From assembly GCA_023515725.1 (NCBI GenBank), contig JALDTO010000235.1, positions 294,371 through 358,370 of the forward strand: DNA of 64,000 nucleotides, written 5' to 3'. Source of the DNA: Amoeboaphelidium protococcarum X5 (taxonomy: Eukaryota > Fungi > Aphelidiomycota). This document shows positions 22,153 through 63,093 of the stretch, piece by piece (position 1 is the first letter of the stretch; the number at the start of each line of letters is the position of its first letter). The notes under the pieces were generated by a model that was not told the origin of the DNA, did not search any database, and saw only the letters and a list, made by a program, of their open reading frames with translations. Both the position numbers and the translations under genes were made by a program.

Positions 22153-24588
22153 ATGCTCGTATCTGTTATTCTTGTCATATGCTGGTTTGTCACAGCTGTA
22201 ACTTGCGATTATGCAAATGTGTCATGGGTTGGCACGCTTTCTAACAACTTGCTGTAATACATTGACACTGTGACTGATCTGAATGGTGATTTCATTGTAA
22301 CATATTGGTACACCAATATTCAATCTCAGTTTGTCAACTCATTCAATGGTGCTGTATAAAACACGTAGAATTACTATTATGGATTATATTCGTCTTCATT
22401 TGTTAAAATCAGTGGCTTAACTGGCTAAATTTTGTGGACTATATCAATGTCAGGCCCAGAAGGTGCTTACAGTTATTAGCTAACAACCGACAACTAAGGC
22501 AATCTAATTGCCACAGGTCAACTTTATGCTGGCACTGCTGCTTTGAGATTTTATTTCAATGGTGTATTAGTCTATACTTTAACATAAAGCACGACTACCT
22601 CATGGCATGCGAAGTGGTCTTCATCGGGTCAGTTATAATGGGCTGGTTTTTAATCTAATGAGTTCATGAAAATTAAGGGGCTTGCATCGGATTCTGTCAA
22701 CAACATCTATCAACTCGCTCAAACCAACCAAGCTCTGTCATATACTTACGGTGGATTTAGCTTTAGTCCCACAACTACAGTCTGCAATGTGCGCAAGGTA
22801 AATCCTAGCGGTGTCCAGGTATGGAAGGTAAACATTGGGTATGCTGCCGTGGTAACATGTAGCTCTGCCATTGCCGTGTCTTAAACAACTGGTGACGTGT
22901 ATGTGACGGGATCGTTCACTTTTGGAGACACCTTGTAAAATGGTTATAATACTCCAATTGGCTTACTCGGTATTCGTGATTCTACCAACCAGCTTTTCAT
23001 CACCTAACAAAGCAATATGACTCTGAAGTCAGCTTTGTTTCTGGCCAAGTTTAATAGCAATGGTGTCTTCTAATGGCTAATGCGTATAGACGATTCTCAG
23101 CCGTCACCATCCGCTCTAAGTGTATCACCGAATGGAAATGTTGTCCTTGTTGGGAATTATCAGAACACAGCATCACCTCTCAAATTCTATGACACTAACG
23201 GTTAAATGGTCCGCAGTGTAAATCCTACTCGAGCAATGATGAGTGGCTTTGTGGCTACGTACAGTTCAAATGGTTCTTTAATATATGTCGCGACAATAGA
23301 CGGAAGTGACGATGATTAGCCGTTTGACTGTGTAGTCGATGCTAATTCAAATGTCTTTGTGGCAGCTTAGCTTTCATTGTCCCCCGTGGGAGTAGTTGAT
23401 GGGTTGGGAAACAATTAAAGTATACCATCATCTCAGGCTACTGTATTAAAATTTAGTTCATCTGGTACATTCCTGTATAGTTTCCGTGGCACCAGTGTTG
23501 GTGAAATAAAAGCCGTAAATATTTTACGAGGAGTTAACAATAGTCTGATCTTGGTTGGAAGTTTTGCTAACGTGTCAATCCTCTTTGATAGCTCCGCCAA
23601 TTATGGTATGAATTTGCCCACATCTGTTGGAGGTTTGGTATTTGCAAAGTACTTAGATTATGTGGAAACGCCAAGAACTACTACCACTACTACAACCACA
23701 ACAACTACGACTACTACGAGCACAACAACTACGACTACTACGACCACTACTACGAGCACAACTACGATTACTACTACCACAATTAGTACGACAACAACAA
23801 GTACGACTACGATTGCAACTATGACGACTAGCAATATTACTTTGACATCTGAGTCATTGTCAACTTAAGCCATAACGTCCCCAATCTCAGTAGACGATAT
23901 AGCGAGCACGCACTTCAGTTAAACTTTAATTCTCTACTCTACTTATACATCTACAGATTAGCTTTTCATCGTCACTAATGTTGACTCCCAAAGCTCTGCT
24001 GTCAATGCAAAATCGGCTGCTTCGATGACCCTATCTGGATCTATGGAATCTCTCAATTTAAGTACAGTCTCTTCTTCCAGTTTGAACGTCATTGGTACCA
24101 GTCTATGGTTTATTAGTGATTAATTGGCATTGACTGACAGTCACACGGTTAGTAGTCAAAAACTGTCAGTTTCATAGTACGCAACTACTGCTACTACTCC
24201 ACAGAGTACGCTTTAAATATCCGGGTCCTATACATTTGTTGTTGGCAACACTGTTTTCACTTCTCAAACTCAGGCTGATGGAGATAGCGGTAATAGCAAT
24301 ACTTAGAGTAATAATGTGTCTGGTAATCAGAATTCCGGAGCAGTGTCCTTCTTCTCTGATACAAGCAAATTGGCAGCTGTAGCAGCAGCGTTCTTCGTTC
24401 TGGTCAGTATTTTAGCGTACGTGATGGCCAAATGTGCAAATAGGCGTAAAACTAGAAAGTGGGCATTGCATAAGAATTACAGCAACGCCATCACGACGAC
24501 AACCATGGACATGAACGGTATGACTGCAATGAACGCCACCATCCCTGTGCATCAAACGACTATGATGTAGTAGAATTAGCAGAATTGA
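22153..24588 (+). CDS. Propeller receptor family copy A: beta-propeller + Thr stalk + TM + short tail, no kinase (811 aa)
   Basis: Single table-6 frame with ectodomain homologous to copies B-F. TM LAAVAAAFFVLVSILAYVMA is followed by KCANRRK, and TGA comes about 50 codons later. Confidence 0.85.
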
Positions 24589-25499
24589 TTTAACTATGAT
24601 TGCAAACGTAAGATAATGACAAAGAATAAAAATTAGATGTATTTTATGAACCGCCCAGAATCCGCTCACTTTACAGTCTCTGTGTATAGAATTTATCTGT
24701 TTGATGGGCAGTTAAATGTAAAGATCAGAGATGGTACAATTAATATCTTGTTTACCGTGTTGACGCGTTTCATTCGCTCTCTTTCTTTTATCACACACAC
24801 TGGTTGAAACAATAGTAAATGTCTTTGTCATCTCATTTCATATTCACTTCACTCTTTCACGTTTTACTACTTATTGCGTTTTGTGTGATGGTGGAAATTC
24901 CTCAAAGCATGGTGCAAATAGATTTACAAATGCAGCTGTGGAGTTAACAGAAGATAGAGGGGTGGTAAGGGACTCTCAAATCTAGTGCAACATTTGAACT
25001 GCTGACATAAAGAATGGATAGAATGCGCAGATAGTCATCTTTGCTTGGGAAAATATGGTAAGCAAAATACTGATTGCGCAGTCTTCAGTGATTGAGCAGT
25101 ATGGATTACTTACACTGCGGCTGATGGTTTTGAAGCTTTTGCCTTCTTTCATGTAGGAAATAAAATAGATTAAAGTCAATTGAAAAGTATTTGTGCCGTG
25201 TACCTGAGCTCTATTTAATCGATTTATTCTATTCTATATTACTTATTCTATCATCAATTGATCATCCATAAATTCTGGTTTATTTCCAGTTGGTTTCCAA
25301 TCGCTGGTGTTGGAGGAGCGCGTCATTTGCTCAGCTGCAGTCAGCATGGTTGATACATGTTATTGATGTCGAGTTTGTGGATGCTCTGTAACGCATTCTT
25401 GATCGCCAAAGTCTATGAGATAGTAGTATGGACCTTCTTGAGATGGAGAAGATTAAATATGCAGATTATTAGGCGTTAATAATTATAACGTCTTGCATG

Positions 25500-27180
25500 C
25501 GTTCCAGTGATTATAATCAGCAAACTGCGCTAACTAATTTTCAAGATGAGTAGCTACAAGAAGACTCAATGGTTCTGAGACTGATAAAGGTACTGTGACA
25601 CTTGAAGTGCTTTAGTAGTATTGGAACTTAATCGTCTGCAAATGAAGCTCTTGTGGCTGTCGAGGAGTATATCAATCTCAAGGCTCCCAGTAATGCAAGT
25701 AACATCGATGCTAAAATCAGAAATAAGCTAAGTGATGACAAGTATCATTCTGCCGTGCAATTTGTTGTCCAGATGGAAGAGTGGTTTGATGACTTGACTG
25801 ATTGTGGCTATGCAGTTGTTCAACTTGTGGCTTTGATGTTGCCTTTGTCTAAGTATATAACGAAGTTCGCAAGATGGTGATGAGTCTTAACATTAACGTT
25901 ACTAACAAATCTGACGAGCTGGTGGAAAATTTTATTCTAGCTGGCTTAAAAAAATCAATTCTGCGCACTGATAATATGGCATTGTTAGAGTAATAGTGTA
26001 ATCGTCCGGATGCGTCCTCCCCGGTGTCCAGTGACAAGCCGCGTCAGGTTGCTGTTGCATAATCGCACCATATGCAATTGAAGTACCAGATCACTTGATT
26101 ACTGCTGAATTTTCCATTTATGTCGCACCGTTTAAGAGTCGTCAACTTACCTTAAAATGTGTGATTATCCTAAGCTGGAGGCTTATTGTACGGAATGTCA
26201 CAGGTAACGAAAACAGTGCTGGCCACTCATTTGGATGACATGGATGGATCGAATTTCAGACTTACCTACATGGATGAGTTATATGAATGGATTATTTGGG
26301 TCATATGAACCATGTAATTGGCATAGTCATATGGATATGACTAGTATTACTTTACTTGCTGTGAAGAGTAACCAACTAATTGTAATGGAATAGTTTCAAC
26401 AACAAGAAAGTCTAGTTTTTGATGAATTAAGAATCCGAAGTAGATTGGATTAGAAAGAAAACATCCGATGAGTTGAGCTTAGATGATTAACACTTAATGC
26501 TGTTGGATGATAAATGGAATTGATCGCTAGCCTGGATAAAAAGTGGTCGGTATAGTTTAGCATTGCAACTTGAGTATTGGCGGTGTCTGGTTCTCGCCTC
26601 ATGTGTTTGTGGTAGAGTAGTTGCCTTTTGACTTAATTCTTGGAAGACCATTTTAGATACACAGCCAATACTAGTAAGAAACTAGTGGAGATGGTACGAC
26701 TGTCATCGGTATGATTGATCCTGAAGATTCTGGCAGACGAGTCCAGATATCTGTGGAAGAGAGTTTTAAGAATGTTCCGGAGCTACTCGATAACAAGGCG
26801 CTCAAGAGTTTACATGCTGCTTGTATCAGGCCTATGGAAATGAATGCTATGGTCAACACCAAGTACAAGAAGGTTGGAGTTAAAGTAAAGCCTGCAATTG
26901 ATTAGAATTACATTCTGCCTAAACCTGAAGGTACTGGTGAGATGTTAGAAGATAAAAGGATCGAGCTGGACTTGGAGATTTGCAGATTGAAGAGCTCTGT
27001 CGTGTAATTAGTGAGAAAATCACACTTAAGTAATGCCAGTTCACTCTAATGGATGACATGAATGGATCGATTTCAGACTTACCTAAATGGATGAGTCATA
27101 TGAGCCAGGTAATGGTCCTACTCATGCGGATATGACTGGAGTAGAAGTACTTAACTTGCTTTGTTAAGTAATCAATGCTC
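25500..27180 (+). mobile_element. Degenerate Ty3/Gypsy-type retrotransposon fragments (gag-like, protease C-terminus, pre-RT linker)
   Basis: SKYITKF...NKSDELVENFILAGLKKSI (gag-like), FDLILGRPF (aspartic protease C-terminus, about 26630) and KYKKVGVKVKPA linker typical of fungal Gypsy pol. Several frameshifts and stops. Confidence 0.6.
26224..27175 (+). repeat. Pair of diverged 135-150 bp direct repeats (26224-26375 and 27042-27175)
   Basis: ggatgacatggatggatcgaatttcagacttacctacatggatgagttatatga versus ggatgacatgaatggatcgatttcagacttacctaaatggatgagtcatatga, with similarity continuing downstream. Confidence 0.75.
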
Positions 27181-28154
27181 TTATTTTCATTACCAACTAT
27201 AAAATTCATCATTCATCTTCTTCAACGGTGGACCCTTCCGCACCTGAATCAGTATTCATTTCATCACAACTTTCTGTTACAGTGTATCGACACGTATTAG
27301 ACTTTGTCGACATTCCACCGATCTACAAACTCGTCTGGACTACCAGAGCCACTGCTTCCCAGTGAGCTGCTTTCAATGCAGTCTTACAATTAGCGGTTCA
27401 TATACAATGATATGAACTTGAAGGATATTGGACTCGAACAGCATTAGATGTTGACCACCAATACAAGCTTTGACGCGCTTAGTCGGCCTTATACTGTACA
27501 AAAAAGTACCGGTAGAAGGGCTGATTATCATGAGATCAGTTAGACAGACCGACAGAGTTGATACGGCAACACGCGTGTGCTTTGAAACGGTTGGATGCGA
27601 TTGAGCAGAAACGACCCACAGTTTTAGTCATGGAAGTCATATGGTAAATTCAAACCTCTCATGGCTTGTGACATGATTATATGAATAGTGACATCTATAT
27701 GAATGGATATGGAATATAAGCCATTTAATTTCCCAGCACTGTACCATGCCATACAAATACCATACTTATCTAGCCTTGGTTACGTACAGTCTACTTTGAG
27801 TCTAAATTTCGTGATCTTTTGAACTGAATTAATAATTACTCATGTTGTGTTACATATTACTTTTTCAGCCCGTGTCATAAACTGTATGTTCACTATCGTG
27901 ATTATATACCAGGCATTGACATTGCTAAAATGTTTTATTTGGGTGCGAACAAATGTCTCTCTACTTCAAGGATCTGAGCTTTTTGACAACCAATGTATTA
28001 CAAAGTAGCTATTTTTAGCCGGATGGTGATTTACACATCTGTTGAGTGCAGTCAAACGTCTTTTCATCTTCACAGTAATCAAGTGCATTAACTATTACTA
28101 TTGACTTAATTTTATTTAATTGCTAAATTGTTTAGCGTAATTCATTAACAGTTA

Positions 28155-31100
28155 ATGCTCGTATCTGTTATTCTTGGCATCTGCTCGATTGTAACAACGG
28201 TGGCCTGTGATTATGCCAATGTGTCATGGGTCGGCACGCTTTCTAACAATTGGCTACAGTACATTGACACTGTGACTGACCCCAATGGTGACTTCATTGT
28301 ATCTTATTGGTACACCGGTGTTCAATCTCAGTTTGTCAACTCATTTGGTGGTGCTGTATAAAACACGTAGAATTTCTATTTTGGGTTGTATTCGTCCTCT
28401 TTTGTAAAAGTAAGTGGGACAACTGGTTAGATACTGTGGACAGTATCCATGTCTGGCTATTAAGGTGCTTATAGTTATCAGCTGACTACTGACAATCAAG
28501 GCAATCTGATTGCCGGTGGACAACTTTACGCTGGCGTTGAGGATTTGAATTTTTATTTCAATGGGGCGTTAGTTTATACTCTGCCATATAGCACAACGTC
28601 ATCATGGCACGCTAAATGGTCGTCAGCTGGTCAATTGCAGTGGGCCGGTTTTCAATCTAATGAGTTTCCTACAATTACGGGACTTGCATCAGATTCTGGT
28701 AACAACATTTTTCAAATATCATAAGCTAGCCAGACTCTGTCATATACTTACGGTGGATTTAGCTTTAGTCCCACAACTTCTGTCTGCAATTTGCGAAAGG
28801 TAAATCCTAGTGGTGTTTAGTAATGGAAAGTCAATATTGGGTATGCTGCCGTGGTAACGTGTAGCTCAGCGATTGCGGTGTCTTAGTCAACTGGTGATAT
28901 TTATGTTGCTGGATCGTTCACTTTTGGAGACACCGTGTAGAATGGCTACAAGACTCCAATTGGCTTACTTGGTGTCCGTGATTCTACTAACCAGCTTTTC
29001 ATCACCCAACAAAGCAATATGACTCTGAAGTCAGCTTTGTTTCTGGCCAAGTTTAATAGCAATGGTGTCTTTTAGTGGCTGGTGCGTATAGACGATTCGT
29101 AACCGTCACCATCCGCTTTGAGTGTATCACCCAATGGAAATGTCGTCCTGGTTGGTTCGTATCAGAACACAGCCTCACCTCTTAAATTCTATGATACTAA
29201 CGGCTAATTGGTCCGCAGTGTAAATCCTGCTCGAGTAATGCTAAGTGGCTTTGTGGCGACCTTCGGTTCATCTGGTACAATAGTTTACGTTGCGACCATG
29301 GACGGATCAGGTGATGATTATGCCTACCACAGTGCAGTTGGAGCTGACTCTAATGTCTTTGTGGGATTATACTCTTCATCAACGTCTATTGCCATGATTG
29401 ACGGATTAGGAAATAGCTAAAATATTGCAGCATCTGCGTCAAGTATATTGAAGTTCAGTCCATCTGGTAAGTTTCTGTATAGCTTTCGCGGCAGTAGTGG
29501 TATTTCGGGCAGTAATATACTAAAAGGTTTTAACAACAGTCTGATTTTTGCTGGAAGCTTTAGTGGTGCGTAAAAATTCTTGGATAGCTCCTCCGATAAG
29601 GGTGTGGATTTGCCGACAACTGGTGGAGGTATGGTATTTGCAAAGTACTTGGACTATGTGTAAACGCCAACTACCACTACAACAACAACAACTACTAGTA
29701 CTACCACAACTACCACTACAACTACTACCACTACGACTACGACAACTACTACAACTACATCGACCACGACCACGACAACTACAACCACGACACCTACTAC
29801 GACTACCACAACTACCACAACGACAACAACAACTACTACCACTCCTACTACAACGACGACCACCACCACTAGTACGACAACTACTACGACGACCACAACA
29901 ACGACCACAACAACGACTACGACGACGACTACTACCTCTACTACAACCACGCCTACTACGACTACAACTACAACCACCACCACGACGACTACCACAACGA
30001 CACCCACTAGTACTACGACAGTCATGAGCACAGGATTATATGGCAGTAGTATAATAAGTCACATAACCTCTACTTCGTCTCAAGGTGAGAGTAAAGTTAA
30101 TACTTTGCCAACGTCGTCTGAATTTGGTCTTAAAAGTACCGCTAGTTTGGTGAGTTATACTACTCAAGTGATGTTTACGTTGAAGTCTGCTGAACATAGC
30201 TCCAGATCTGGAGGCAGTATAAGCATAAGTGATGGCGAAGCAGGATAAGTGTAGCCTGGTACTTAGTCTTCTATGATGACACTGTACATTGTTGTCATTG
30301 CGATTGTCTGCTTTTTGATTTTAGTGTTTGTTCTGCTGTCAATGTATTGCATTAGGCGCAGATACATCAAAACTCGAATGCTTTCCTCACGAATGAAGAA
30401 CAAGACATCAAGTAGTGCTGCTGGTACAACTGAACAATCATATAGCACGGTAATAGGCGCTGCGACTCAAGTAGTGGGAACTTTGATGAGTGGGACAACG
30501 TTTATGAACACGTCGATGGAAGTTGCGGTGCCTGCATATTTGGAGTTGAAGCGTGATCTAAATTTCAGAATGGTGCCGAACTCCTTCATTAATAAAGGTG
30601 GTTAAGCTGAGATTTAGGTTGCTGAGATTTTGTCGTATCCACCTGGACATCCTTTTGCTTCAACTGGTACTAAATTCGTAGCTGCTAAGTGTTTTATTGG
30701 CAAGGTGTAGCGTGATAGCGTTAAGTAGGAGATTGCTCTCATGTGGAGATTTAAAGACTATGACCAGATTGCAAAGCTGGTGGGATTTGATGGTTAAAAT
30801 AATGTCTTGCTCATGCTAAATTACGAACTTGGTTCGTTAGAGTAGCTTATTCTGAATCAAGCTCAACCGGTGGATTACTCTTTTGAATTGCAGGCAATGT
30901 TATGCTTTGACGTTATTACCGCATTAGTGGTCCTTCATTAGAATGCTGTGGTCCATAATGACGTCAAGTCTGGCAATTACTTACTGTATCAAGACGTTAA
31001 TGGCGCTTTGAGAGCGTCTCTGACGGACTTTGGTATCTGTACGCTTCAATCACAAGCCAATGTCGTGTAAGGCATAGAATGGAATCGACTACAAGGCCAC

Positions 31101-31412
31101 ACTGTCTCTTATGCTGCACCTGAGGTTCTTGCGAGATCATTGGTACCTGAGCAGCTTCTTCCTGCAAGAGATGTTTATGCTGGTGCTGTGGTCATGTTTG
31201 AGATTTTAGCGCGTATGAAAGCGTGGAGCGGCTATAAAGCAACTCAAGTCACTGAGATGGTCCTTCAAGGTTTGAGACCCGAGGCTTAATTTCTGAATAA
31301 TCGTGCTCTAATGCTTTTCCAGGTTGTTCATCTTGCTTGGGCTCAAGATCCTTTCATGAGGCCCGTTGCTGCGGCTATTGCCAACGAAATTCAGAAGCTC
31401 GCATATTCTTGA
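28155..31412 (+). CDS. Propeller receptor kinase copy B (1085 aa), non-RD kinase
   Basis: Signal peptide, seven propeller repeats, poly-Thr 29670-30020, TM LYIVVIAIVCFLILVFVLLSMYCI-RRR, kinase VAAK, HNDVKSGN, DFG, YAAPE; no internal TGA found. Confidence 0.92.
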
Positions 31413-31770
31413 TGATTTAAATGATGATGATTTAATACAATGTTTTAATGCTTTGATGTGGTTTCAACATTTAAATTTTGTTAAGTGTACAGCAATGGGA
31501 ATACGTTGTGCAATGTATTAACAATACGCCATATTTCTTACCAGAAGTGCTGCACTACTCTAGAGTTCCACTGAATCTATTTTTGGCCTGATGACGATTC
31601 GTACATTGATTTGTTAGCCACGTTGCCATCTTCTACAGAGCCCATGCATTCTTATCATCAACTAATCCTGATACATAAAATATAATTAGCTGATAATAAG
31701 CTAAACTCAATATTGCTGATATTAATAAAATAAGCTAGATATTGAATCAATTCAAATTATCAACTATCTA

Positions 31771-34700
31771 ATGCACGCGTTTGTGATTCTTCTCATCTGC
31801 TGCTTTGCATCGACTGCCTTGTGTGACTATGCTAATGTATCATGGATTGGCACATTATCAAGCTACGATTACTACATTGGCACTGTCGCCGACATTAATG
31901 GTGATTTCATTGTATCATATCGACACAACTCCATTTAATCACAGTTTACTACTACTTTTGGCGGTGCTGTCTAAAATACTCAGAATATCTATGTTGGCAC
32001 GCAGTACTAGTGTTCATTTGTGAAAGTAAGTGCAACGACTGGCTAAATTTTGTGGACGATTTCCATATCAGCCTCGTTCAATATTTTCTGCTATCAGCTC
32101 ACTACAGACAATGCTGGCAATCTTATAGCCGCAGGTTTTCTTTCTCCTGTCCCAACTGATTTGATGTTTTATCGTAATGGAGTATTGGAGTATACTTTGC
32201 CATAAGGTTCGGCAACATGGTATGCTAAGTGGTCATCATAAGGTATATTTTAGTGGGCTAAATTTGCACCTTTTGATTTGCCGTTGATTTAAGGACTTGC
32301 TGTTGATTCTAGCAATAACATCTTTCAACTCTCGTATGCTAGCTAAGCGCTCTCTTACTCGTATGGTGGGTTTTCTTTTGCTCCAACCACTACTGTCTGC
32401 AATTTGCGCAAGGTAGACCCCAGTGGTAATCACTTGTGGCAAGTTAATATTGGGTATGCTGCCGTAACAATGTGCAATTCTGCTATCGCTGTGTCGTAAT
32501 CAACTGGCGATGTTTATGTTGCCGGAACATTTACGTTTGGAGACACTGTGTAGAATGGTTATAATACTCCAATTGGCTTACTAGGCATTCGTGATTCCTC
32601 CAGCTAGCTCTATGTTACTCAGCAAAGCAATATGAATACGAAATCGGCCCTATTTCTGGCCAAGTTTAATAGCGCTGGTGTCTATTAGTGGTTGGTTCGT
32701 ATTGACGATTCTCAACCTAATCCAGCCGCTCTTAAAGTCTCACCAAATGAAAATGTAGTTCTTGTAGGTGATTATTAGAACACAGCTTACCCTCTTCGAT
32801 TCTACGATAAAAACGGATAATTAGTCCGGAGTGTAAATCCCAGTCGAGTTATGCTTAGTGGTTTCGTGGCGTCCTACAGCTCAGCAGGTTCTCTAATCTA
32901 TGTTGCGACAATGGACGGACCTAATGATGATAAAGCGGTCCATATTGCAGTTGACGATTATTCAAATGTATATGTGGCAGCAAGGCTTTGGCCCTCTGTT
33001 GTTCTTACTGACGGGCTAGGAGTCAATTAAATTATTCCTGCATCTCAGTCGACTGTATTGAAGCTAAGTCCAGCAGGTAAATTTCTGTATAGCTTTCGTG
33101 GTTCATGGGGTTCCAATGGTATAACTATCCATAATATTCTGAAGGGCTTTAACAATAGCTTAATTCTGGCTGGTAATTTTGGCGAGCCTGCGTCACTATC
33201 TGATAGTCTCAACAATTATTATTTGGGGTTGCCTACCTCCTCTCGCGGTATAGTTGTCGCAAGGTATGTGGACTTCGTCTCTGCTCCCACTACCACAACA
33301 ACAACCACGTCGACAACTACCACCACCACTACGACTACTACAACTACTACGACAACTACGACAACTACATCGACCACGACCACGACAACTACAACCACGA
33401 CACCTACTACGACTACCACAACTACCACAACGACAACAACAACTACTACTACTCCTACTACAACGACGACCACCATCACTAGTACGACAACTACTACGAC
33501 GACCACAACAACCTCTACTACAACCACGCCTACTACGACTACAACTACAACAACCACCACGACGACTACCACAACAACACCCACTAGTACTACGACAGTC
33601 ATGAGCACAGGATTATATGACAGTAGTATTATAAGTCACATAACCTCTACTTCGTCTCAAGGTGAGAGTAAAGTTAATACTTTGCCAACGTCGTCTGAAT
33701 TTGGTCTTAAAAGTACCGCTAGTTTGGTGAGTTATACTACTCAAGTGATGTTTACGTTGAAGTCTGCTGAACATAGCTCCAGATCTGGGGGCAGTATGAG
33801 CATAAGTGATGGCGAAGCAGGACAAGTGTAGCCTGGTACTTAGTCCTCTATGATGACCCTATACATTGTTGTCATTGCGATTGTCTGCTTTTTGATTTTG
33901 GTGTTGGTTCTGCTGTCAATGTATTGCATTAGGCGCAGATACATCAAAACTCGAATGCTTTCCTCACGAATGAAGAACAAGACATCAAGTAGTGCTGCTG
34001 GTACAACTGAACAATCATATAGCACGGTATTAAGCGCTGCGACTCAAATAGTGGGAACTTTGATGAGTGGTACAACGTTTATGAATTCTTCGATGGAAGT
34101 TGCGGTTCCTGCTTATTTGGAGTTGAAGAGTGATTTGAACTTTCGAATGGTACCCAATTCCTTCATTAATAAAGGTGGATAAGCTGAGATTTAGGTTGCA
34201 GAGATTTTATCATATCCGACAGGGCATCCGTTTGCTACAAGTGGTACAAGATTGGTTGCAGCTAAATGCTTCATTGGCAAAGTGCAGAAGGATAGCGTTC
34301 ATCAGGAAATTGCTTTAATGTGGAGATTTAAAGACTATGACCAGATTGCAAAGCTGGTGGGATTTGATGGTTAAAATAATGTCTTGCTCATGCTAAATTA
34401 CGAACTTGGTTCGTTAGAGTAGCTTATTCTGAATCAAGCTCAACCGGTGGATTACTCTTTTGAATTGCAGGTAATGTTATGCTTTGACGTTATTACCGCA
34501 TTAGTGGTCCTTCATTAGAATGCTGTGGTCCATAATGACATCAAGTCTGGCAATTACTTGCTGTATCAAGACGTTAATGGCGCTTTGAGAGCTTCTCTGA
34601 CGGACTTTGGTATCTGTACGCTTCAATCACAAGCCAATGTCGTGTAAGGCATAGAATGGAATCGACTACAAGGCCACACTGTCTCTTATGCTGCACCTGA

Positions 34701-34989
34701 GGTTCTTGCGAGATCATTGGTACCTGAGCAGCTTCTTCCTGCAAGAGATGTTTATGCTGGCGCTGTGGTCATGTTTGAGATTTTAGCGCTTAAAAAGGCT
34801 TGGGAAGGCTATAAAGCAGCTCAAATCACTGAAATGGTCCTTTAAGGTTTAAGACCGAATGCTCAATTTCAGGATAATCGCTCCCAGATGCTACTTCAAG
34901 TTATTTAAGTCGCCTGGGCTCAAGATCCTTTCATGAGGCCCGTTGCTGCGGCTATTGCCAACGAAATTCAGAAGCTCGCATATTCTTGA
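31771..34989 (+). CDS. Propeller receptor kinase copy C (1072 aa), non-RD kinase
   Basis: Same architecture as B; HNDIKSGN, DFG, YAAPE; single table-6 frame. Confidence 0.92.
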
Positions 34990-35347
34990 TGATTTAAATG
35001 ATGATGATTTAATACAATGTTTTAATGCTTTGATGTGGATTCAACATTTAAATTTTGTTAAGTGTACAGCAATGGGAATACGTTGTGCAATGTATTAACA
35101 ATACGCCATATTTCTTACCAGAAGTGCTGCACTACTCCAGAGTTCCATTGAATCTATATTTAGCTTGATGACGATTCGTACATTGATTTGTTAGCCACGT
35201 TGCCATCTTCTACAGAGCCCATGCATTCTTATCATCAACTAATCCTGATACATAAAATATAATTAGCTGATAATAAGCTAAACTCAATTTTGCTGATATT
35301 AATAAAATAAACTAGGTATTGAATCAATTCAAATCATCAGCAATCTA

Positions 35348-36967
35348 ATGCACGCGCTAGTGATTCTTCTCATCTGCTGCTTTGCATCGACTGCCTTGTG
35401 TGACTATGCTAATGTATCATGGATTGGCACATTGTATAGCAATCTGTTTTAATACAGCGCCACCGTTACAGATCCTTTTGGTGATTTTATTCTACTACAT
35501 CGATATGCTGCCGGTCAATCCTCGTTTTCCACCACTCTTGGTGGTGCTGTCTAGAGTACACAGAATTTTGTTTCTGGATCTCTACCTTTTGCATTTCTGA
35601 AGATTAATGGGTAAACTGGCTAGATCTAGTGGACTGCATCCGTTGACTGCAGTACTGGTGTTTTCAGCTGGCAATTGACCACAGACAATTAAGGTAATCT
35701 CATTGCATCAGGTTTCGTTTTTGGTGTTGCTGCTCTCAGATTTTATCTCAATGGAGTATTAGTCTAGACTTTGGCATAGAGCACAACAACTCCATGGCAT
35801 GCTAAGTGGTCGCCGGCGGGTCAATTTTTGTGGGCCCAATTTCTACCTGCTGATCTTTAAAGGATTACCGGACTTGCAGTTGATTCAGCTAACAATATCT
35901 TTCAAATGTCGTAGGTTAACCAGGCTCTTTCATATACTTATGGAGGATTTAGCTTCAGTCCAACAACTACCGTCTGCAACTTGCGCAAGGTCAATCCAAG
36001 TGGTGTTGAGCTGTGGAAAGTCAATATTGGGTATGCTGCCGTAGTAACATGTAACTCTGCTATTGCCGTGTCGTAGTCAACTGGCGATGTGTATGTTGCT
36101 GGATCGTTCACTTTTGGGGACACTGTGTAGAATGGCTACAATTCTCCAATTGGCTTATTAGGCATTCGAGATTCGTCATATAATCTCTATATTACTCAAC
36201 AAAGCAACTTAATTTTAAAGTCGGCTCTATTCTTGGCGAAATTCAATAGCGCTGGTGCGTTCTAGTGGCAGGTGCGTATTGACGATTCGTAACCAGTACC
36301 ATCCGCTCTAAGTGTGTCGCCAAATGGAAACGTAGTTCTTGTTGGCTCGTACTAAAATGCAGGATATCCTCTTGGATTTTATGCTGGCAGTGGATAATTA
36401 GTCCGCAGTGTAAACCCCAGTCGAGTAATGCTTAGTGGCTTCGTAGCGACCTACAGTCCAACTGGTTCTCTAGTATATGTAGCGACAATGGACGGAGCTA
36501 GTGATGATTAGGCTGTTGATTGTGCTGTGGACGCTGTCTCCAACGTTTTTGTGGCAGCATAGCTTTCATCGCCTTCTGTTGGTGTAGTTGATGGATTAGG
36601 GAATAGTTAAAGCATTCCATCATCTCCATCAACTGTGCTGAAGTTTAGTCCATCTGGTAAGTTTCTGTATAGTTTTCGAGGTACTGGCATCACCGTTCGT
36701 GATATTCTGAGAGGAATCGACAATAGCTTGATTCTAGCTGGTTAATTCACTAGCGGATCTAAATTATTTGACAGTTCCAACAGTAACGGTTTGGATATGC
36801 CGTGGTCTGGTAGTGGTTACGTGTTTGCAAAGTATTTGGATTATGACTCTACTCCGACAACCACAAGTACTACTACTACAACTACATCAACGACTACTAC
36901 TACTACTACTACTACAACTACGACTACCACGACAACTACTCCAACAACAACTACTACGGCTACGACA

Positions 36968-37017
<50 letters not shown>

Positions 37018-38692
37018 ACCGACTACGACAACTACTACGACTTCGACAACGACAACCACGTCGACAACTACTCCTACGACGACGACGACGACTACTAGTA
37101 CTACAACAGCATCGACAACTACGACGACGACCCCTACTACGACGACAACAACAACAACAACAACCACAACCACGACTACTACTCCGATCTCAATTACCAC
37201 TACATCGACTACTGCGACTGCTACGACAACAACTAGTACTGCGCCGACAACTACCACTGCCACAACGTCGTTTGCTAGTACAACATCATCCGAAGCTCAA
37301 TTAAAAAATCTCGTTAACTCCACCTCATCCTAAATTGCTGTTTATATAAGCTCTGTGACAACTTCTCTGTTATCTGATCCACAGACTACCACTGCGATCT
37401 TGATTAGTTATTCTACATAATTAATTTTCGAGTTTCGCTCGAATTAGTAAAGCTCTAGCATTGCGAATAGTATATCACTCAATGACGACGTAGCAGGACA
37501 AGTATAGCCTGGAGCTTAGTCTTAAATGATGACTCTGTACATTATTGTCATTGTGATTGTGTGCGTTTTGATTATTGCACTGGTTTTACTGTCTATGTAC
37601 TGCATTAGGCGCAGGTACATCAAGGCTCGCATGAGATCTTCCAAGACGCTTTTATCAAGGAATATTGGAGGTATGACTGATCTAACATTAAATGCGGCGA
37701 TTGGTTCGGCGATTTAAACAGGAGGTACGGCGATGGGTGGTACAACGTTTATGAATTCTTCGATGGAAGTTGCTGTGCCAGCTTACTTGGAGTTGAAGCG
37801 TGATTTGAACTTTAGAATGGTACCTAATTCCTTTATCAACAAGGGCGGATAAGCTGAGATTTAGGTTGCAGAGATTCTGTCTTATCCGACAGGGCATCCG
37901 TTTGCTACAAGCGGTACAAAATTGGTTGCAGCTAAATGCTTCATTGGCAAAGTGCAGAAGGATAGCGTTCATCAGGAGATTGCTCTGATGTGGAGATTCA
38001 AGGACTATGACTAGATTGCAAAGTTGGTTGGTTTTGATACTGTGCACAATGTATTGCTTATGATCAATTATGAACTGGGTTCTTTGGAACAGCTTATTCT
38101 GGGCCAAACTTTACTTGCTCAGCAGGTCGATTATTCAATGTAGCAATAGCAAATTTTATGCTTGGACGTTTTCACAGCGTTATGGATCTTGCATTAGAAT
38201 GCTGTGGTCCACAATGATATAAAGTCTGGTAATTACTTGGTGTAGCAGGATTCTAATGGCTTTGTGAGAACTGTACTGACAGATTTTGGTATTTGTACTC
38301 TACTTTCGCGGGCGAACGTGGTTTAGGGCATGCAATGGAATCAGCTGAAAGGACACTCTGTAATGTATGCTGCACCAGAGGTTTTGTCTAAGCTACAAGT
38401 TCCAGAGCAGCTTCTCCCTGCAAGAGATGTATATGCTGGTGCTGTGGTGATATATGAGATTTTGGCGCGTAGAAAAGCATGGGACGGCTATAAAGCAGCG
38501 TAAGTGAGTGAAATGGTACTGCAAGGTTTAAGACCGGATGCATCATTTCAGGATTATCGTGTGCAGCTGCTCTTTCAGATTATTTAACTTGCTTGGGCTC
38601 AAGATCCTCAAATGAGGCCTACTGCGGCAGCTATTGCTGGTGAGCTATAAAACATTCCACCAGTAGAATACACGACGGCACTAATGTAATGA
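35348..38692 (+). CDS. Propeller receptor kinase copy D (1114 aa), non-RD kinase
   Basis: Same architecture; HNDIKSGN, DFG, YAAPE; single table-6 frame. Confidence 0.92.
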
Positions 38693-40670: not shown

Positions 40671-40968
40671 TTTACACTTTATTATACTTGAGGTAATAGA
40701 AAGCTAATGATGATGATCACTATCGGAGAAAAGAATAAAATGAATTGATGATCACACGAGAGCGGCGATATTCACAGTGACGTGATGAAAGCGGCCGAAA
40801 TCATAGTGTTACACGCTAAGTGATAATTTACTTACACTTTTGCAGTAACAATAATTAGGTTAGAGAAGATTTAATATAGCAAATAGTGAATTTTATTGAT
40901 TTATATTATTTATAAACACCTCACTGCTAAATTATTTACAAACTTGCCACAACTAATTATGAGACAAT

Positions 40969-43221: not shown

Positions 43222-44928
<1,707 letters not shown>

Positions 44929-49817: not shown

Positions 49818-52800
49818 ATGCTGGTATCACTGATCTTGCCATCTTCTGCTTTGTGACAACCGTGGTGTGTGATTATGCGAATGTGTCTTGGATTGGCACG
49901 TTATATAACAATATGATGTAGTACGTTGATACAGTGACTGATCTCAACGGTGACTTCATTGTATCCTATTAGTATTATTACGTTCAATCCTAGTTTGCAA
50001 CTACTTTTGGTGGTGCGGTCTAAAATACACAGAATTTCGATTATAGGGATTACACGGCTTCCTTTGTGAAAATAAGTGGCTCAACAGGCTAGATATAGTG
50101 GACTGTGTCCATGGCTGGCCCACAAAGTGCTTATGTCTACAAATTGATTACAGATCAGGCAGGCAATCTCATTGCCACTGGTTAACTTTTCTCTACCGTT
50201 GCTGCTTTGAATTTTTACTTTAATTGAGTGCTAGTCTATACATTGCCATAAGGTACAACCTCCTCATGGCAGGCAAAATGGTCTTCAGCAGGTCAATTTT
50301 AGTGGGCTTCATTTCCGCCAAATGAATTTATCGACATTAAAGGACTTGCAGTTGATTCTGGTAATAATATTTTTCAAATGTCTTAGGCTAACCAGGCTCT
50401 ATCGTATTTATATGGAGGATTTAGCTTTACTCCTGTAACTTCTGTCTGCAACGTGCGCAAGGTAAATCTAAGTGGTGTTGAGTTGTGGAGAGTCAATATT
50501 GGGTATGCTGCAGTGGTAACATGTAACTCTGCTATTGCCGTGTCGTAATCAACGGGTGATGTGTATGTGGCTGGATCATTCACCTTTGGAGACACCATGT
50601 AGAATGGCTACAAGACTCCTATAGGATAAATTGGCGTTCGTGATTCAGCCAACTAGCTCTATATTCTCCAGCAAAGCAACATGATTTTAAAGTCAGCTCT
50701 ATTTTTGGCAAAGTTTAGTAGTAGTGGTGGTTTTTAATGGATGGTGCGTATTGACGACTCTCAACCAGTACCTTCCGCTCTAAGTGTGTCACCGAATGGT
50801 TATGTCAGCCTAGTTGGTTCGTATTAAAATACAGCATATCCTCTTGGATTTTATAATGTCAGTGGATAATTAGGTCGCAGTGTAAATTCCAGTCGAGTTC
50901 TTCTTAGTGGCTTTGTTGCGACTTACAGCCCTGCTGGTGCTCTCCGTTATGTTGCAACAATGGATGGTGCTAGTAATAATAAGGCTGTTAGTTCTGCTGT
51001 TGATGCGAGTTCAAATGTTTTTCTAGCAGCATAGTGTTTATCGTATTCAGTCATTGTAGTAGATGGATTAGGGAATAGCCAAAGTATTCAAGCATCTTCA
51101 TCAACTGTGCTAAAATTTGGTCCATCTGGTGATTTTTTATATAGCTTCCGTAGTACTTATGGTTTATAACCTTACGCAATTTTAAAAGGTTCTAGCAATA
51201 GTCTTATTCTAGCTGGTTAATTTAGTAGCGCATCCAAACTATTTGATAGTTCCGGCAATTATGGTGTGGATTTACCATCGTCTGATAGTGGTTACGTGTT
51301 TGCGAAGTATTTGGACTATAATTCTACTCTGACAACCACAAAGATAACTACTACTACCACAACAACGACAACTTCTACTACAACTACCACCACCACCACT
51401 ACCACTACCACTACTACAACCACGACAACAACAACCACGTCGACAACTACTACTAGTACCACAACAACAACAACTACTACTACCACTACTACTACTCCGA
51501 CCACAACTACGTCTATTACAACCACCACTACAACGACAACTACTCCTACGCCGACTATTACTACAGGTACTACAACAAAATCGACCACTACCGCTACGAT
51601 GACTCCTAATACAACAAAATCGACAACGACACCTACTACCACAACGACAACTACCACGACGACTACTACTACTAGTAGTACTACAACAACATCGATCACT
51701 ACTATTACTACTGTTACGACGACGACTACTGCCACTGCTCCGCCTACAACTAGTACTACGTCTGCTCCGACTATAGTTAATACTACGCCGACAACGACAT
51801 TTGCTAGTGCAACATTATCCTAAGCTGCTTCAATAAGTCTCGTTACCTCCACATCATCCTAAATTGCTGTTGATATTAGCTCTATGACAACTTCTCTGTA
51901 ATCTGATCCTCAGACTACCTCTGCAATCTTGATTTGTTACACTACATAACTAATTTTCGAGTTGCGCTCAAACTAGTAAAGCTCTAGTATTACGATTAGT
52001 ATGTCACTCAATGACGGCATAGAAGGATAGGCATAGCCTGGAGCTTAGTCCTAAATGATGACAATGTACATAACTGTAATTGTGGTTGTGTGTGTTTTGA
52101 TTTTGGTGCTGGTTCTGCTGTCTATGTACTGCATTAGGCGCAGGTACATCAAGTCTCGCATGAGATCTTCCAAGATGCTGTTATTAAGGAATACTGCAGG
52201 TATGACTGATCAAACATTAAATGCTACAATTGGGACGGCGATATAAACAGGAGGTACCGCGATGGGTGGGACAACTTTTATGAATTCTTCGATGGAAGTT
52301 GCTATACCTGCATACTTGGAGTTGAAGTGTGATCTAAATTTCAGAATGGTGCCCAATTCCTTTATCAACAAGGGCGGATAAGCTGAGATTTAGGTTGCAG
52401 AGATTTTATGATATCCGACAGGTCATCCTTATGCTACAAGTGGTGCAAGATTGGTTGCAGCTAAATGCTTCATTGGAAACGTGAATAGAGACAGCGTTCA
52501 TCAGGAGATTGCTCTGATGTGGAGATTTAAAGACTATGACTAGATTGCAAAGCTGGTTGGTTTCGATACTGTACATAATGTACTGCTTATGATCAATTAT
52601 GAACTGGGGCCTTTGGAACAACTGATTCTGGGCCAAACTCAGTATGCTCAACAGGTCGACTATTCAACGGAGTAACAGCAAATTTTATGCTTGGACGTTT
52701 TCACAGCGTTATGGATCTTGCATTAGAACGCTGTGGTCCACAATGACATCAAATCTGGTAACTATTTGGTGCAGCAGGATTCTGATGGTTTTGTGAGAGC

Positions 52801-53197
52801 GGTTTTGACATATTTTGGTAGCTGTACTTTACTTTCGCGGGCAAACGTGGTGCAAGGCATGTAATGGAATCAGCTGAAAGGACACTCTGTAATGTATGCT
52901 GCACCTGAGGTTTTGTTTAAGCTGTAAGTGCCTGAGCAGCTTCTCCCTGCACGAGATGTCTATGCTGGCGCTGTGGTGATATTTGAGATCTTAGCGCGTA
53001 GAAAGGCTTGGGAAGGCTATAAAGCAGTGTAAGTGAGCGAAATGGTTCTATCAGGTATAAGGCCGGAAGCTAAATTACAGGATAATCGCGCCCAGATGCT
53101 ATTTCAAGTTATCCAACTTGCTTGGGCTCAAGATCCGTACATGAGGCCTACTGCTGATACAATTGTTAGTGAAGTGTAAAAGCTCGCGTCGGTATGA
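49818..53197 (+). pseudogene. Propeller receptor kinase copy E, pseudogene
   Basis: 1-nt deletion in the signal peptide (about 49833), in-frame TGA at 50225 and 52409, and DFG changed to YFG (52811). Confidence 0.88.
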
Positions 53198-54517: not shown

Positions 54518-54615
54518 TTACGGTCATAGAGCATCTCTCGGTACTGTATACTGTATATGGTGATATATAGTGTGAAAAAGTATTGTGCAAGTATATACTG
54601 ATTATATGATTACAT

Positions 54616-57244: not shown

Positions 57245-57304
57245 ATTTCACTGTTTAAATACAACTTACATAAGACTTGTGTCATAAAAAGTGCTCTTAT
57301 GTGA

Positions 57305-57635: not shown

Positions 57636-57675
57636 TATCTTAATAAAAACGTGCTTATAACAACATTATATATAT

Positions 57676-59880: not shown

Positions 59881-62800
59881 TCATACCGGTGCGAACTTCT
59901 AAATTTCACCAACGATCGCTGCGGCAGTAGGCCTCATAGACGGATCTTGTGTCCATGTAAGTTGAATAATTTGATATAGCATCTAAGCACGATTATCTGA
60001 AAATTTAGCTTCCGGCCTTATACCTGATAGAATCATTTCGCTCACTTACACTGCTTTATAACTTTCCCAAGCCTTTCTACGCGCTAAAATCTCAAACATC
60101 ACCACAGCGCCAGCATACACATCTCTTGCAGGGAGAAGCAGCTCGGGCACTTGGAGTTTAGACAAAACCTCCGGTGCAGCATACTTGACAGAGTGTCCTT
60201 TCAACTGATTCCATTACATGCCTTACACCACATTGGCCCGCGATAGAAGTGTGCATATACCAAAGTCCGTCAATGCTACTCTAAAATCGTCATTTCCGTC
60301 CTTGTACACCAAGTAATTACCGGACTTGATGTCATTATGGACTACAGCATTCTAATGAAGGATCATCATTGCGGTAACAACGTCAAAGCATAACATCGCC
60401 TGCAAGTCAAAAGAGTAATCCACCGCTTAAGCTCGATTCAGGATAAGCTACTCCAGCGAACCAAGTTCGTAATTTATCATTAGCAAGATATTATTTTGAC
60501 CATCAAATCCTACCAACTTTGCAATTTGATCATAGCCTTAAAACCTCCACATCAGAGCAATTTCCTAATGAATGCTATCTCTCTGCACATTGCCAATGAA
60601 GCATTTCGCTGCTACAAATTTTGCACCACTTGTAGCATAAGGATGCCCTGCCGGATAATCAAAGACCTCCGCAACTTAAATCTCAGCTTATCCTCCCTTG
60701 TTGATGAAGGAATTGGGCACCATTCTAAAGTTCAGATCACGCTTCAACTCCAAATATGCAGGCACCGCAACTTCCATCGACGTATTCATAAAAGTTGTCC
60801 CACCCATCGCGGTACCTCCTGTTTATATCGCCGTCCCAATCGTAGCATTTAATGTTTGATCAGTCATACCTCCAAAATTCCTTAATAACAGCATCTTGGA
60901 AGATCTCATGCGTGACTTGATGTACCTGCGCCTAATGCAGTACATAGATAGCAGAACCAGCAACAAAATCAAAACGCACACAATGGCAATGATTATAATA
61001 TAAAGTGGCATCATAGAGGACTGAGTGCCAGGCTATACTTGTCCTTTCACGTCGTCGTCACGAGAGGTACTAGCAGGAATGGAAGAACTGTGTTGATTCG
61101 AATTCCACGCGAATGACATATACGACGCCTAATTAAGCGAGGGCGCAGAATTAGACATCTGGCCAGCTGTACCAGAAGTGGACACAACACTGACTTTGCT
61201 AACATTATAGTATGATGTCGAATTAACCATGCTTGTGATAGCCACTACAGCTGACAGTATACTCACAGACGTCGTGGTGCTAGCAGGAGTAGAGGTAGTC
61301 GTAGTAGATGTAATACTCGTCGTCACAGTCGTAGTTGTAGTTGCGGTAGTTGTCGTAGGAGTAGTAATACTAGTGGTTGTAGTTGATGTAGTAGGAGTCT
61401 TTATAGTGGTAGTGGTCGTTGTCGTAGTCGAGGCTGTCGTTGTCGTGGTAGTTGCTATTAGAGTAGTAACACTAGGTGTAGTCGTGACAGATTTAGATGT
61501 CGTATAAGATATTATCGGAGCAGTAGTCTTGGTGGTGGTTGTGGTCGGAGTAGTGGTGGTGGTGGTGGTACTTGTGGTTGTCGCAATAAACCCATTGTCC
61601 AAATACTTTGCAAACACGTAACCACTACCAGACGACGGCAAATCCAGACCATTATTGCCGGAACTATCGAATATTTTGGATGCGCCACTAAAATTACCAG
61701 CCAGAATCAAGCTATTGTCATACCCTTTCAGAATTTCACGGACGGAGATGCCAGTACCACGGAAACTATATAACAACTTTCCAGATGGACTAAACTTCAA
61801 TACAGTTGACGGAGAGGATGGTATATCCCACTTGGTTCCTAATCCATCAACCACTCCCACTGACGACGATGAAAATTATGCCGCAACGTAAACATTAGAA
61901 TTAGTGTCGACAGCACAATGAACCGCTTAATCATCGCCTGCCCCGTCCATAGTCGCAACGTAAATAAGAGAACCCTGTGGACTGTAGGTCGCCACAAAGC
62001 CACTTAGCATTACCCGACTTGGATTAACACTGCGGACTAATTAACCGCTAGTGTCGTAAAATCCAAGAGGGTAAGCTGTGTTCTAATACTAACCAACGAG
62101 GACAACATTCCCATTTGGTGACACACTTAGGGAGTTTGGTTACGGTTGCGAATCGTCAATGCGCACCAACCATTAAAAGACACCAGCACTATTTAACTTG
62201 GCCAAAAACAGAGCGGATTTCAGATTCGTGTTGCTTTGTTAGGTGGTGTAAAGCTGGTTTGTAGAATCACGAATACCGAGTAAGCCAATTGGAGTCTTTT
62301 AACCATTCAATACATCGTCCCCAAAAGTGAAAGATCCAGATACGTACACATCACCAGTTGATTACGACACGGCAATAGCAGAGTTACACGTAACCACTGC
62401 AGCATGACCGAAATTAACTTTCCATAGCTAAACACCACTGGGATTTACCTTTCGCAAATTACAGACAGAAGTTGGGATACCAAAGCTAATTCCCCCAACC
62501 GTATACCTAAAATCTTAGTAAACTTACGACATTTGAAAAATTTTATTATCAGAATCAACTGCAAGTCCCTTTATCGGTAAAAATTCATTAGCTAGACGTG
62601 AAGTCCACTAAAATTGACCTGCTGATGACCACTTAGCTTGCCATGACGATGTTGGGCCAAAGGACGAATAATAGACCTGCACTTAATTAAAATAAAACCT
62701 TATTGCTGAACCTGCATCATACATCTGGCCCGTGGCTATTAGATTGCCTGAATTGTCTGTGGTCAATTAATGGCTGTAAACGCCTCCGGTGCTACACATG

Positions 62801-63093
62801 GATATTGTCCACAAAATCTAGCCAGTCGAGCCATTAATTTTTACAATAGAAGTGGACTATTACCCATAATCGACATTACTCGTATTTTAGACAGCACCAT
62901 CAAATGAGTTAACAAACTGAGATTGAACATTGTTGTACCAATATGATACAAAGAAGTCACCATTGAGGTCAGTCACAGTGTCGATGTACTATACCATGTT
63001 GTTTGAAAGCGTGCCAACCCATGATACATTCGCCCATTCACTTGTTACAGCTGTACCAAACCAGCCAATGCCAAGAATTACAGATAGAAGCAT
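59881..63093 (-). CDS. Propeller receptor kinase copy F (1070 aa), non-RD kinase, inverted relative to A-E
   Basis: Same architecture; HNDIKSGN, DFG, YAAPE; no internal TGA found on reading. Confidence 0.9.

Follow-up and report, generated by a model that had tools for sequence, protein, structure and literature searches.

Likely propeller–stalk–kinase receptors in the aphelid Amoeboaphelidium protococcarum

Analysis of a 64,000-nucleotide stretch of the Amoeboaphelidium protococcarum genome (hereafter, the window) uncovered six copies of a gene family that we consider likely to represent lineage-specific type-I propeller–stalk–kinase receptors, with two kinase-less receptor-like proteins among the family members. 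The same reading, held with the same confidence, includes a proposed ligand-clustering mechanism and an evolutionary mode in which propellers behave as cassettes. A. protococcarum is an alga-killing relative of fungi. To our knowledge, fungi largely lack receptor kinases, and aphelids are their sister group.

Translation with table 6, in which both TAA and TAG encode Gln, produced 41 ORFs of at least 250 aa, compared with a single one under table 1. Table 11 gave no more than 8 ORFs of at least 150 aa across 20–64 kb of the window, and ORF calling with either table 11 or table 1 was rejected, as it returned only fragments. Each copy contains 26–40 in-frame TAA/TAG codons and uses TGA as its terminator. 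Re-annotation with table 6, which the initial annotation had called for, recovered all six genes, and their start codons coincided exactly with those assigned earlier: 22153 (A), 28155 (B), 31771 (C), 35348 (D), 49818 (E) and, on the minus strand, 63093 (F). The view that the copies are intronless also held, since every ORF is unbroken by introns and a 1.4-kb contig is collinear with the C ectodomain. Table-6 translations of the window proteins, with X placed at the TGA codons of E, served for script comparisons only, while stop-free pieces of window genes and database models of the family were used as queries for folding and domain searches. The public protein collection has no entry for window genes A–D and represents F only by a truncated model from a second strain; the NCBI protein set likewise lacks most copies of the family. 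The non-standard code, together with the low-complexity stalk, is the likely cause of these missing or mis-modelled members.

The common architecture proposed for the copies proved to be real: a signal peptide, a repeat ectodomain of ~480 aa, a Thr-rich linker, a TM helix and, except in A, a kinase. Inspection of the translations by eye showed the topology of receptor-like kinases, with a putatively cleavable signal peptide, an ectodomain, a single TM helix and a cytoplasmic kinase. The mixture of tandem and dispersed copies was confirmed as well, as were the absence of a kinase in A and the broken state of E. Five copies retain ORFs (811–1114 codons), and four of the genes (B, C, D and F) encode intact receptor kinases.

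Table-6 translation and alignment define copy A (22153–24588, plus strand) as a kinase-less receptor-like protein composed of a signal peptide, an SBBP-type propeller (aa 19–502) of probably seven blades, a 237-aa Thr/Ser-rich linker, a TM helix and, at the end, ~60 aa of tail. Copy B (28155–31412, plus strand; 1085 aa), delineated by translation, alignment, linker statistics and Pkinase matches, starts with a signal peptide (28155–28208) followed by the propeller (28209–29654), the Thr-rich linker (29655–30272), the TM helix (~30273–30350) and the kinase (~30552–31409). Copy C (31771–34989, plus strand) is a mosaic, discussed below. Translation and alignment also define the remaining three copies. 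D (35348–38692, plus strand) encodes 1114 aa and has a homeolog, C213b, with 91% ectodomain identity. F (59881–63093, minus strand) encodes 1070 aa. E (49818–53197, plus strand) is a pseudogene: it has lost 1 nt at about codon 8, two TGA codons interrupt its frame, and its DFG motif has become YFG. RNA-like contigs, which suggest expression but come from runs of unrecorded type and are no proof of transcription, span B up to its stop codon. Their coverage of B and C shows a gap over the spacer, and near-identical contigs are present in independent runs.

We next consider the ectodomain, which had been described as a seven-bladed propeller built of a recurrent motif. The motif is real but degenerate, and blade-to-blade hhalign comparisons, though in register, are weak (best P 4e-5). 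The propeller fold itself was recovered in two overlapping AlphaFold models (pLDDT 82.2, pTM 0.83 and pLDDT 83.9, pTM 0.85). The first comprises blades 1–6; the second covers 3b–7 and has blade 7 with three strands only, so that the full ring is not seen within one chain. The N-terminal ANVSWVGTL segment fits the blade D-strand motif, making an N-terminal closing strand plausible. Judging from these models, the ectodomain is probably a seven-bladed SBBP-type propeller with the ring closed by the N-terminal strand. The best Foldseek match was the seven-bladed propeller of CylK (E 4e-11), and all the remaining matches were propellers too.

Profile methods support homology to bona fide SBBP proteins. 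A profile of blades 5–7 retrieved 16,128 proteins, and 8 of the 10 best matches scanned were assigned to Pfam SBBP with scores of up to 225 bits. In hhalign, the alignment with bacterial SBBP proteins (97.6%, E 2.6e-12) extended over 109 columns in register. In direct Pfam scans, SBBP (PF06739) was the top family for P0151:1-300, but the score of 17.8 bits did not reach the gathering score of 20.5 bits; P0002:1-400 scored 11.9 bits, P0007 had no SBBP match, and stop-free ectodomain pieces from the window gave neither SBBP nor any other meaningful match. The sister subfamily protein P0162, on the other hand, clears the gathering score with 23.1 bits. The ectodomain is a divergent SBBP-type β-propeller. 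The best bacterial-type matches are mostly anonymous and metagenomic in origin.

Composition statistics delimit a linker of 192–246 aa with 29–58% Thr and 13–19% Ser, a composition that suggests a stalk that is probably O-glycosylated and mucin-like. As to the kinase, B, C, D and F all carry the catalytic residues (β3 Lys, αC Glu, HxD, DxKxxN, DFG and APE), seen in the motifs VAAK, HQEIALM, HNDIKSGN, DFG and APE. Their glycine-rich loop reads KGGQAE, a degenerate form. From its sequence, the kinase looks catalytically competent. Its assignment to the non-RD type stands, since HND, with no Arg ahead of the catalytic Asp, is found in every window copy with a kinase and is shared by P0163 and the distant subfamily. 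P0002 exceeds the gathering scores of Pfam PF00069 / PF07714 with 69.5 and 71.3 bits, and P0162 does so with 78.8 bits; stop-free pieces of window copy B matched neighbouring stretches of the Pkinase profile (118–150 and 160–210) with 19.8 and 19.9 bits. A phmmer search of PDB with a 72-aa kinase piece found no matches. With a 301-aa database model, the closest solved kinase was RIPK1 (E 3.6e-13), followed by FAK, PAK4 and RIPK2. Since FAK and PAK4 score close to RIPK1, the kinase group assignment is uncertain.

The tandem copies revealed an unusual evolutionary mode, in which conserved propeller cassettes lie between homogenised tracts. Repeat search and sliding-window analysis detected two copies of one tract on the plus strand, offset by 3577 nt and 96–100% identical save for short patches. 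The first (29764–31861) includes the stalk, TM helix and kinase of B, a 358-nt spacer, and the promoter and signal peptide of C; the second (33341–35438) includes the stalk, TM helix and kinase of C, the 358-nt spacer, and the promoter and signal peptide of D. Over this 2.1-kb tract, B–C and C–D identity is 96–98%, whereas propeller bodies are ~70% identical. According to sliding-window identity, segment matrices and discordant trees, C has a D-type promoter and signal peptide, a unique propeller body and B-type sequence from the stalk to the 3′ flank. The ectodomain tree and the kinase tree are discordant, and an unrelated ectodomain resides on the same chassis at C264 and C212. These data show that gene conversion or unequal crossing-over homogenises the stalk-to-signal-peptide tract between neighbours, outside the propeller body. 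Homogenised flanks combined with old, mutually distinct propeller bodies indicate that propellers function as cassettes, carried by one common signalling chassis. The sparing of propeller bodies from conversion could be due to sequence divergence alone, rather than to selection.

We then asked whether the family is fast-evolving and diversifying, as the initial annotation had inferred. This was not borne out: pairwise omega is 0.1–0.3 almost throughout and nowhere near 1, and most paralog pairs have dS of ~1, which makes the paralogs old. In pairwise averages, dN/dS of the ectodomain (0.14–0.26 among paralogs) was not elevated relative to the kinase (0.11–0.20). Unsaturated homeolog pairs gave 0.10 and 0.18 for the propeller and 0.12 for the kinase. 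By blade, paralog omega is 0.10–0.21 in blades 3–5 and 0.08–0.47 in blades 1–2 and 6–7. Between strains, values for F and E (0.17–0.24) are inside the range of neighbouring housekeeping genes, and the F propeller is nearly identical. Propeller bodies are of old origin and distinct from one another, and purifying selection acts on every one.

Genome-wide, 12 close copies of the family were counted along with 2 distant ones; three or four of the 12 are broken. One of its two kinase-less members has a GPI-like hydrophobic C-terminal tail. Homeologous contigs carry unequal numbers of copies, six on C233 vs three on C213. The assembly of the second strain is syntenic at ~96% identity. Other lesions disable its E ortholog, which has a nonsense codon close to the N-terminus and an inserted Ty3/gypsy element, and its F ortholog is interrupted by a 1.25-kb dispersed repeat at about window position 62486–62490. 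The suggested variability of the repertoire is thus supported as polymorphism of integrity and presence (the E and F lesions and the homeologous contigs), but not as elevated ectodomain dN/dS. Different lesions in the two strains are consistent with birth-and-death turnover.

How might these receptors work? According to our proposal, the stalk would hold the propeller tens of nanometres off the membrane, letting it bind an extracellular ligand, most probably some carbohydrate or wall constituent from either the algal host or the parasite's own cyst wall. Clustering by the ligand would then activate the kinase, and the kinase-less members might be co-receptors or decoys. Aphelids crash algal cultures, which makes these surface receptors candidate host-recognition determinants. 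A more far-reaching scenario, which we find doubtful, has aphelids joining a bacterial-type SBBP propeller, possibly of horizontal origin, to a non-RD kinase by way of the poly-Thr stalk. The repetitive coding sequence of the stalk would provide the recombination junction, the homogenised chassis would exchange entire propeller cassettes or indeed unrelated ectodomains, and the ensuing set of distinct propellers would decide which algae are recognised.

The proposed receptors have to be weighed against several other readings. The tandem array, kinase-less members, pseudogenes and non-RD kinase would also fit a fast-evolving recognition repertoire akin to plant immune RLK/RLP clusters, in which positive selection on ectodomains tracks host walls or non-self. 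Such a repertoire would further agree with gene content being unequal between strains and homeologous contigs, with the escape of propeller bodies from flank homogenisation and with the outer blades (1–2 and 6–7; omega up to 0.47) evolving faster than blades 3–5. The omega values, even for close pairs (propeller 0.10–0.18, kinase 0.12), the age of the paralogs and the near identity of the F propeller across strains argue against it, and we regard it as unlikely. Purifying selection on conserved ectodomains can be reconciled with a wall-integrity sensor or mechanosensor resembling fungal Wsc1 and Mid2, its glycosylated stalk serving as a spring across the cyst wall of the parasite itself, its propeller as an anchor in that wall and its kinase as a reporter of strain. 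The long Thr/Ser-rich linker, the single TM helix and the chitin wall of aphelid cysts are all in line with this possibility. Yet twelve distinct, old propeller types exceed the need of a single self-ligand, and the unrelated ectodomain on the same chassis suggests many inputs, so that a mechanosensor seems improbable.

Could the proteins be mainly adhesins, with the stalked propeller fastening zoospores or cysts onto the surface of the alga and the kinase being secondary or inactive? Both of the scanned bacterial-type matches with signal-peptide-like N-termini are SBBP proteins, and the two kinase-less members, including the one with a GPI-like C-terminus, would suit this role. It is nonetheless very unlikely, given that the kinase keeps all its catalytic residues and that purifying selection constrains it just as strongly as the propeller. 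Least tenable, and already disfavoured, is the idea that the copies are for the most part DNA without function, or that a hybrid genome gave rise to them as an assembly artefact. Broken copies and the absence of most members from the NCBI protein set speak for it; the five long ORFs with omega of 0.1–0.3, the syntenic second assembly and the near-identical contigs in independent runs speak against it.

The receptors proposed here can be compared with several known systems. Plant RLK/RLP clusters include the non-RD pattern-recognition receptors FLS2 and Xa21. They resemble the aphelid family in type-I topology, tandem arrays, kinase-less relatives, pseudogenes and the non-RD catalytic loop, but their ectodomains are LRR, LysM or lectin, whereas the aphelid family has an SBBP propeller in which we found no diversifying selection. 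Fungal Wsc1 and Mid2 wall-stress sensors share with the family a head group, a long Ser/Thr-rich stalk and a single TM helix; they differ in having a Cys-rich WSC domain or none as the head and a short tail where the aphelid proteins carry a kinase. With bacterial SBBP (PF06739) proteins, the repeat signature and fold are common, and reciprocal profile matches number in the thousands, but aphelid blades are longer (61–82 aa), with hairpin inserts, and the subfamily stays under the Pfam cut-off. Among the 150 matches listed, no kinase turned up in a non-aphelid protein. The C-terminal propeller of CylK (PDB 7FH8, 7RON) is the best structural match (TM-score 0.57 by query). CylK is an alkylating enzyme from cyanobacteria; identity to it is 15–18%, and nothing points to a common activity.

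A so far poorly characterised expansion of RLKs in aphelids has been published (Mikhailov et al. 2022, Curr Biol, as cited in PMC10608142), as the initial annotation had noted. Going by that citation, it deals with this very species and with the general class in question, receptor-like kinases unusual for a fungal lineage. Inside this expansion, one concrete architecture is now defined: an SBBP propeller, a probably mucin-like stalk and a non-RD kinase. We found no description of SBBP combined with a receptor kinase in the literature searched, which did not extend to Mikhailov et al. 2022 itself. The comparison of the aphelid kinase with the plant RLK/Pelle (IRAK) clade is by best PDB matches only. 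RIPK1 is non-RD too (HKD in the alignment), and the relation of the aphelid kinase to RIPK1 and RIPK2 is distant. The neighbouring RLK in the window, at 13690–16203, is an RD kinase.

When the window is read under genetic code table 6, in which TAA and TAG encode Gln, it contains 41 ORFs of at least 250 aa, versus one under the standard code; table 11 yielded just eight ORFs of at least 150 aa between 20 and 64 kb. Each of the six copies A–F has 26–40 in-frame TAA/TAG codons and terminates with TGA. The table 6 reading confirmed the gene starts of the initial annotation (A, 22153; B, 28155; C, 31771; D, 35348; E, 49818; F, 63093 on the minus strand). Aligned, the six copies display the order signal peptide, repeat ectodomain of ~480 residues, linker of 192–246 residues (29–58% Thr, 13–19% Ser), TM helix, juxtamembrane segment and kinase. 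Copy A is kinase-less, with a TM helix of its own and a short tail. Copy E is disrupted by a 1-nt deletion near codon 8 and by two in-frame TGA codons, and it has YFG where the other kinases have DFG. The alignment and the lesions in E thus bear out the proposed plan of signal peptide, propeller, Thr stalk, TM helix and kinase, with one kinase-less member and one pseudogene.

The aligned kinase retains the motifs VAAK, HNDIKSGN, DFG and APE; the HND triplet makes it a non-RD kinase, and its glycine-rich loop is degenerate. Pkinase matches of window pieces fall at adjacent profile positions, and full database models of the family score 69–79 bits, above the Pkinase cut-off. The nearest solved kinase is RIPK1 (E = 3.6e-13), followed by FAK, PAK4 and RIPK2; since all four are among the closest, the assignment to a kinase group is uncertain.

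How is this family represented in public databases? Search queries were either stop-free window pieces or family members taken from public gene models, and table 6 translations were confined to scripts. The public family models are named "hypothetical protein" of Amoeboaphelidium protococcarum. Among 5.8 billion proteins, just three models have the window-type ectodomain, each of them truncated; another four annotated models from A. protococcarum share the kinase chassis. None of these public family models matches A, B, C or D, and F has only one public counterpart, a model that derives from a second assembly (GCA_023515745.1) and is truncated at its N-terminus. One model, P0002 (NCBI MIR68_008796), is in reality a pseudogene copy (L017, G000:C213:185500-192500, minus strand) on C213, the contig homeologous to that of the window in the same genome, G000. 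The model splices around at least three frameshifts, and the poly-Thr stalk is excised as though it were an intron.

Genome searches with pieces and profiles detected 12 close copies, two distant copies and a fragment, along with ~57 related kinase domains. B, C, D, F and two copies on C213 make up the six that are intact and include a kinase. Two are kinase-less, namely A and a copy on contig C142 with a hydrophobic, GPI-like C-terminal tail. Three others (E and one copy each on C213 and C154) are broken, and one, on C179, is an N-terminally truncated ORF.

The propeller nature of the ectodomain was supported, also by the AlphaFold modeling that had been proposed, and profile and fold evidence narrowed it to the type of SBBP, the beta-propeller repeat of Pfam PF06739. 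A profile built from the alignment of blades 5–7 and searched against 1.84 billion representatives (E up to 0.001) matched 16,128 proteins, most of them in 6–37 stretches. Eight of the 10 matches scanned were Pfam SBBP proteins; most of the matches came from anonymous metagenomes, and one is from a named bacterium. Profile–profile comparison with seven such SBBP proteins gave a probability of 97.6% (E = 2.6e-12), with two blades in register. The Pfam SBBP model itself scored the window's subfamily narrowly below its cut-off (17.8 vs 20.5 bits); the cut-off is reached by P0162, an A. protococcarum receptor kinase with the same chassis and regular repeats of ~59 residues. The AlphaFold model of the public protein P0007 (blades 1–6) is all beta (pLDDT 82.2, pTM 0.83); its top Foldseek match is the CylK propeller (E = 4e-11), and the remaining matches listed are all propellers. 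In the model of P0151:1-300 (blades 3b–7; pLDDT 83.9), the last blade is three-stranded and ends at FAKYLD. ANVSWVGTL, at the N-terminus, is similar to the D-strand motif found in the other blades, a likeness that supports, rather than proves, ring closure by an N-terminal strand. Blade-to-blade similarity is weak, so the repeat is degenerate.

We next considered how the copies have evolved. The ectodomain tree is star-like, with C alone on a long branch; the kinase tree groups B, its C213 homeolog C213a and C with support of 100/99. In sliding windows, C and D share 93–99% identity between −350 and +90, and the propeller body of C is 54–84% identical to either neighbor. From the start of the stalk through 250 nt beyond the stop codon, C is mostly 91–100% identical to B, interrupted by short patches of lower identity, one of which, in the N-lobe of the kinase, is D-like. 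The B–C and C–D spacers are each 358 nt long and 97–98% identical, and the tandem repeats are offset by 3577 nt. Together, these features indicate that a ~2.1-kb tract is present twice, starting in the stalk of one gene and passing through its kinase and the spacer to the signal peptide of the next. Identity between the two tract copies exceeds that of homeolog pairs (79–95%), so the exchange is recent. Propeller bodies of non-homeolog copies are ~70–75% identical (A–B, 79%). The stalk-coding DNA comprises 57 overlapping repeat copies and may be a recombination junction. Through such a junction, propeller bodies could be exchanged as cassettes, and either selection or plain divergence could shield them from conversion. 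Receptor kinases at G000:C264:~932500-935400 (L024) and G000:C212:~451300-454200 (L025) have the stalk–TM–kinase chassis of B, D and F (73–75% identity from TM to kinase) and an ectodomain of ~370 aa unrelated to the propeller family (hhalign, 0.2%). On C213, the B-like gene adjoins the D-like gene with no C in between.

The initial annotation had read the family as diversifying, a reading left unsupported by dN/dS (omega), which is well below 1 in the ectodomain as in the kinase. As pairwise averages, the omega figures show that the family is under purifying selection and carry no sign of diversifying selection. With dS ~1 in most pairs, the window paralogs are old; their omega is 0.14–0.26 for the whole ectodomain, 0.10–0.21 for blades 3–5, 0.08–0.47 for blades 1–2 and 6–7, and 0.11–0.20 for the kinase. 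The unsaturated homeolog pairs B/C213a and D/C213b gave 0.10 and 0.18 for the propeller and 0.12 for the kinase. Between the two assemblies, omega is 0.18 for F, 0.17–0.24 for E and 0.04–0.22 for neighboring housekeeping genes. In F (59881-63093, minus strand), the propeller is almost identical to that of the second-strain ortholog at L015 (dS 0.006), with dS of 0.125 for the F kinase and ~0.1 for neighboring genes; this near-identity may stem from recent exchange.

A repertoire both invariant between strains and under uniform purifying selection had been named at the outset as evidence against a diversifying recognition system. Invariance was not seen: the second assembly is syntenic with the window at ~96% identity, and the lesions of E and F differ between the two. 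The second-strain E ortholog has a nonsense codon near the N-terminus and sense codons at the sites of the window E's TGA codons. Between its propeller and stalk lies a Ty3/gypsy-type retroelement (L016:11342-16346) with gag, protease, RT, RNase H, integrase, chromodomain and 111-bp LTRs (terminal direct repeats). The F ortholog is broken within the propeller by a 1.25-kb dispersed repeat (L015:8918-10174), for which the BLAST coordinates point to a 5-bp duplication of the target. Relatives of this repeat, 92–94% identical, occur in the window's genome at C155:463024-464152 and C249:841593-843608.

Four runs of one 2021 study contain 77–78% of the sampled words of the stretch from the B kinase through the spacer to the C propeller. 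Their contigs cover B up to the stop codon, leave the spacer bare and resume 75–135 nt 5′ of C's ATG; in one run, contig depth is ~2200 for B versus ~420 for C. This pattern looks like RNA, although contigs are no proof of transcription. A freshwater metatranscriptome likewise contains a 271-nt segment of B in near-identical form. At window:31920-32038, within C's blade 1, runs X4 and X6 each have one contig that omits 117 nt (39 codons, in frame, without GT..AG ends); the omission could represent a variant allele, a chimera of paralogs or an artefact of assembly.

An expansion of RLKs in aphelids has already been published, according to a citation in PMC10608142. The 3.5 kb that separate A from B (24589-28154) contain no table 6 ORF of at least 250 aa. 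A PA-domain, TM, RING-H2 E3 ligase-like gene (38970-40751, minus strand) lies between D and the housekeeping block, and its second-strain ortholog has Pfam PA and zf-RING_2 domains. The mucin-like membrane protein encoded at 11100-13544 (minus strand) starts with a signal peptide, continues with a long Ser/Pro/Gln-rich region and a TM helix, and ends in a cytoplasmic tail of ~300 aa. In a different receptor-like kinase (13690-16203, minus strand), which has a counterpart on C213 near 203 kb, the signal peptide is followed by an ectodomain of ~250 aa that contains Cys, then by a Ser/Thr/Pro linker, a TM helix and a kinase of the RD type (HRDIKPNN).
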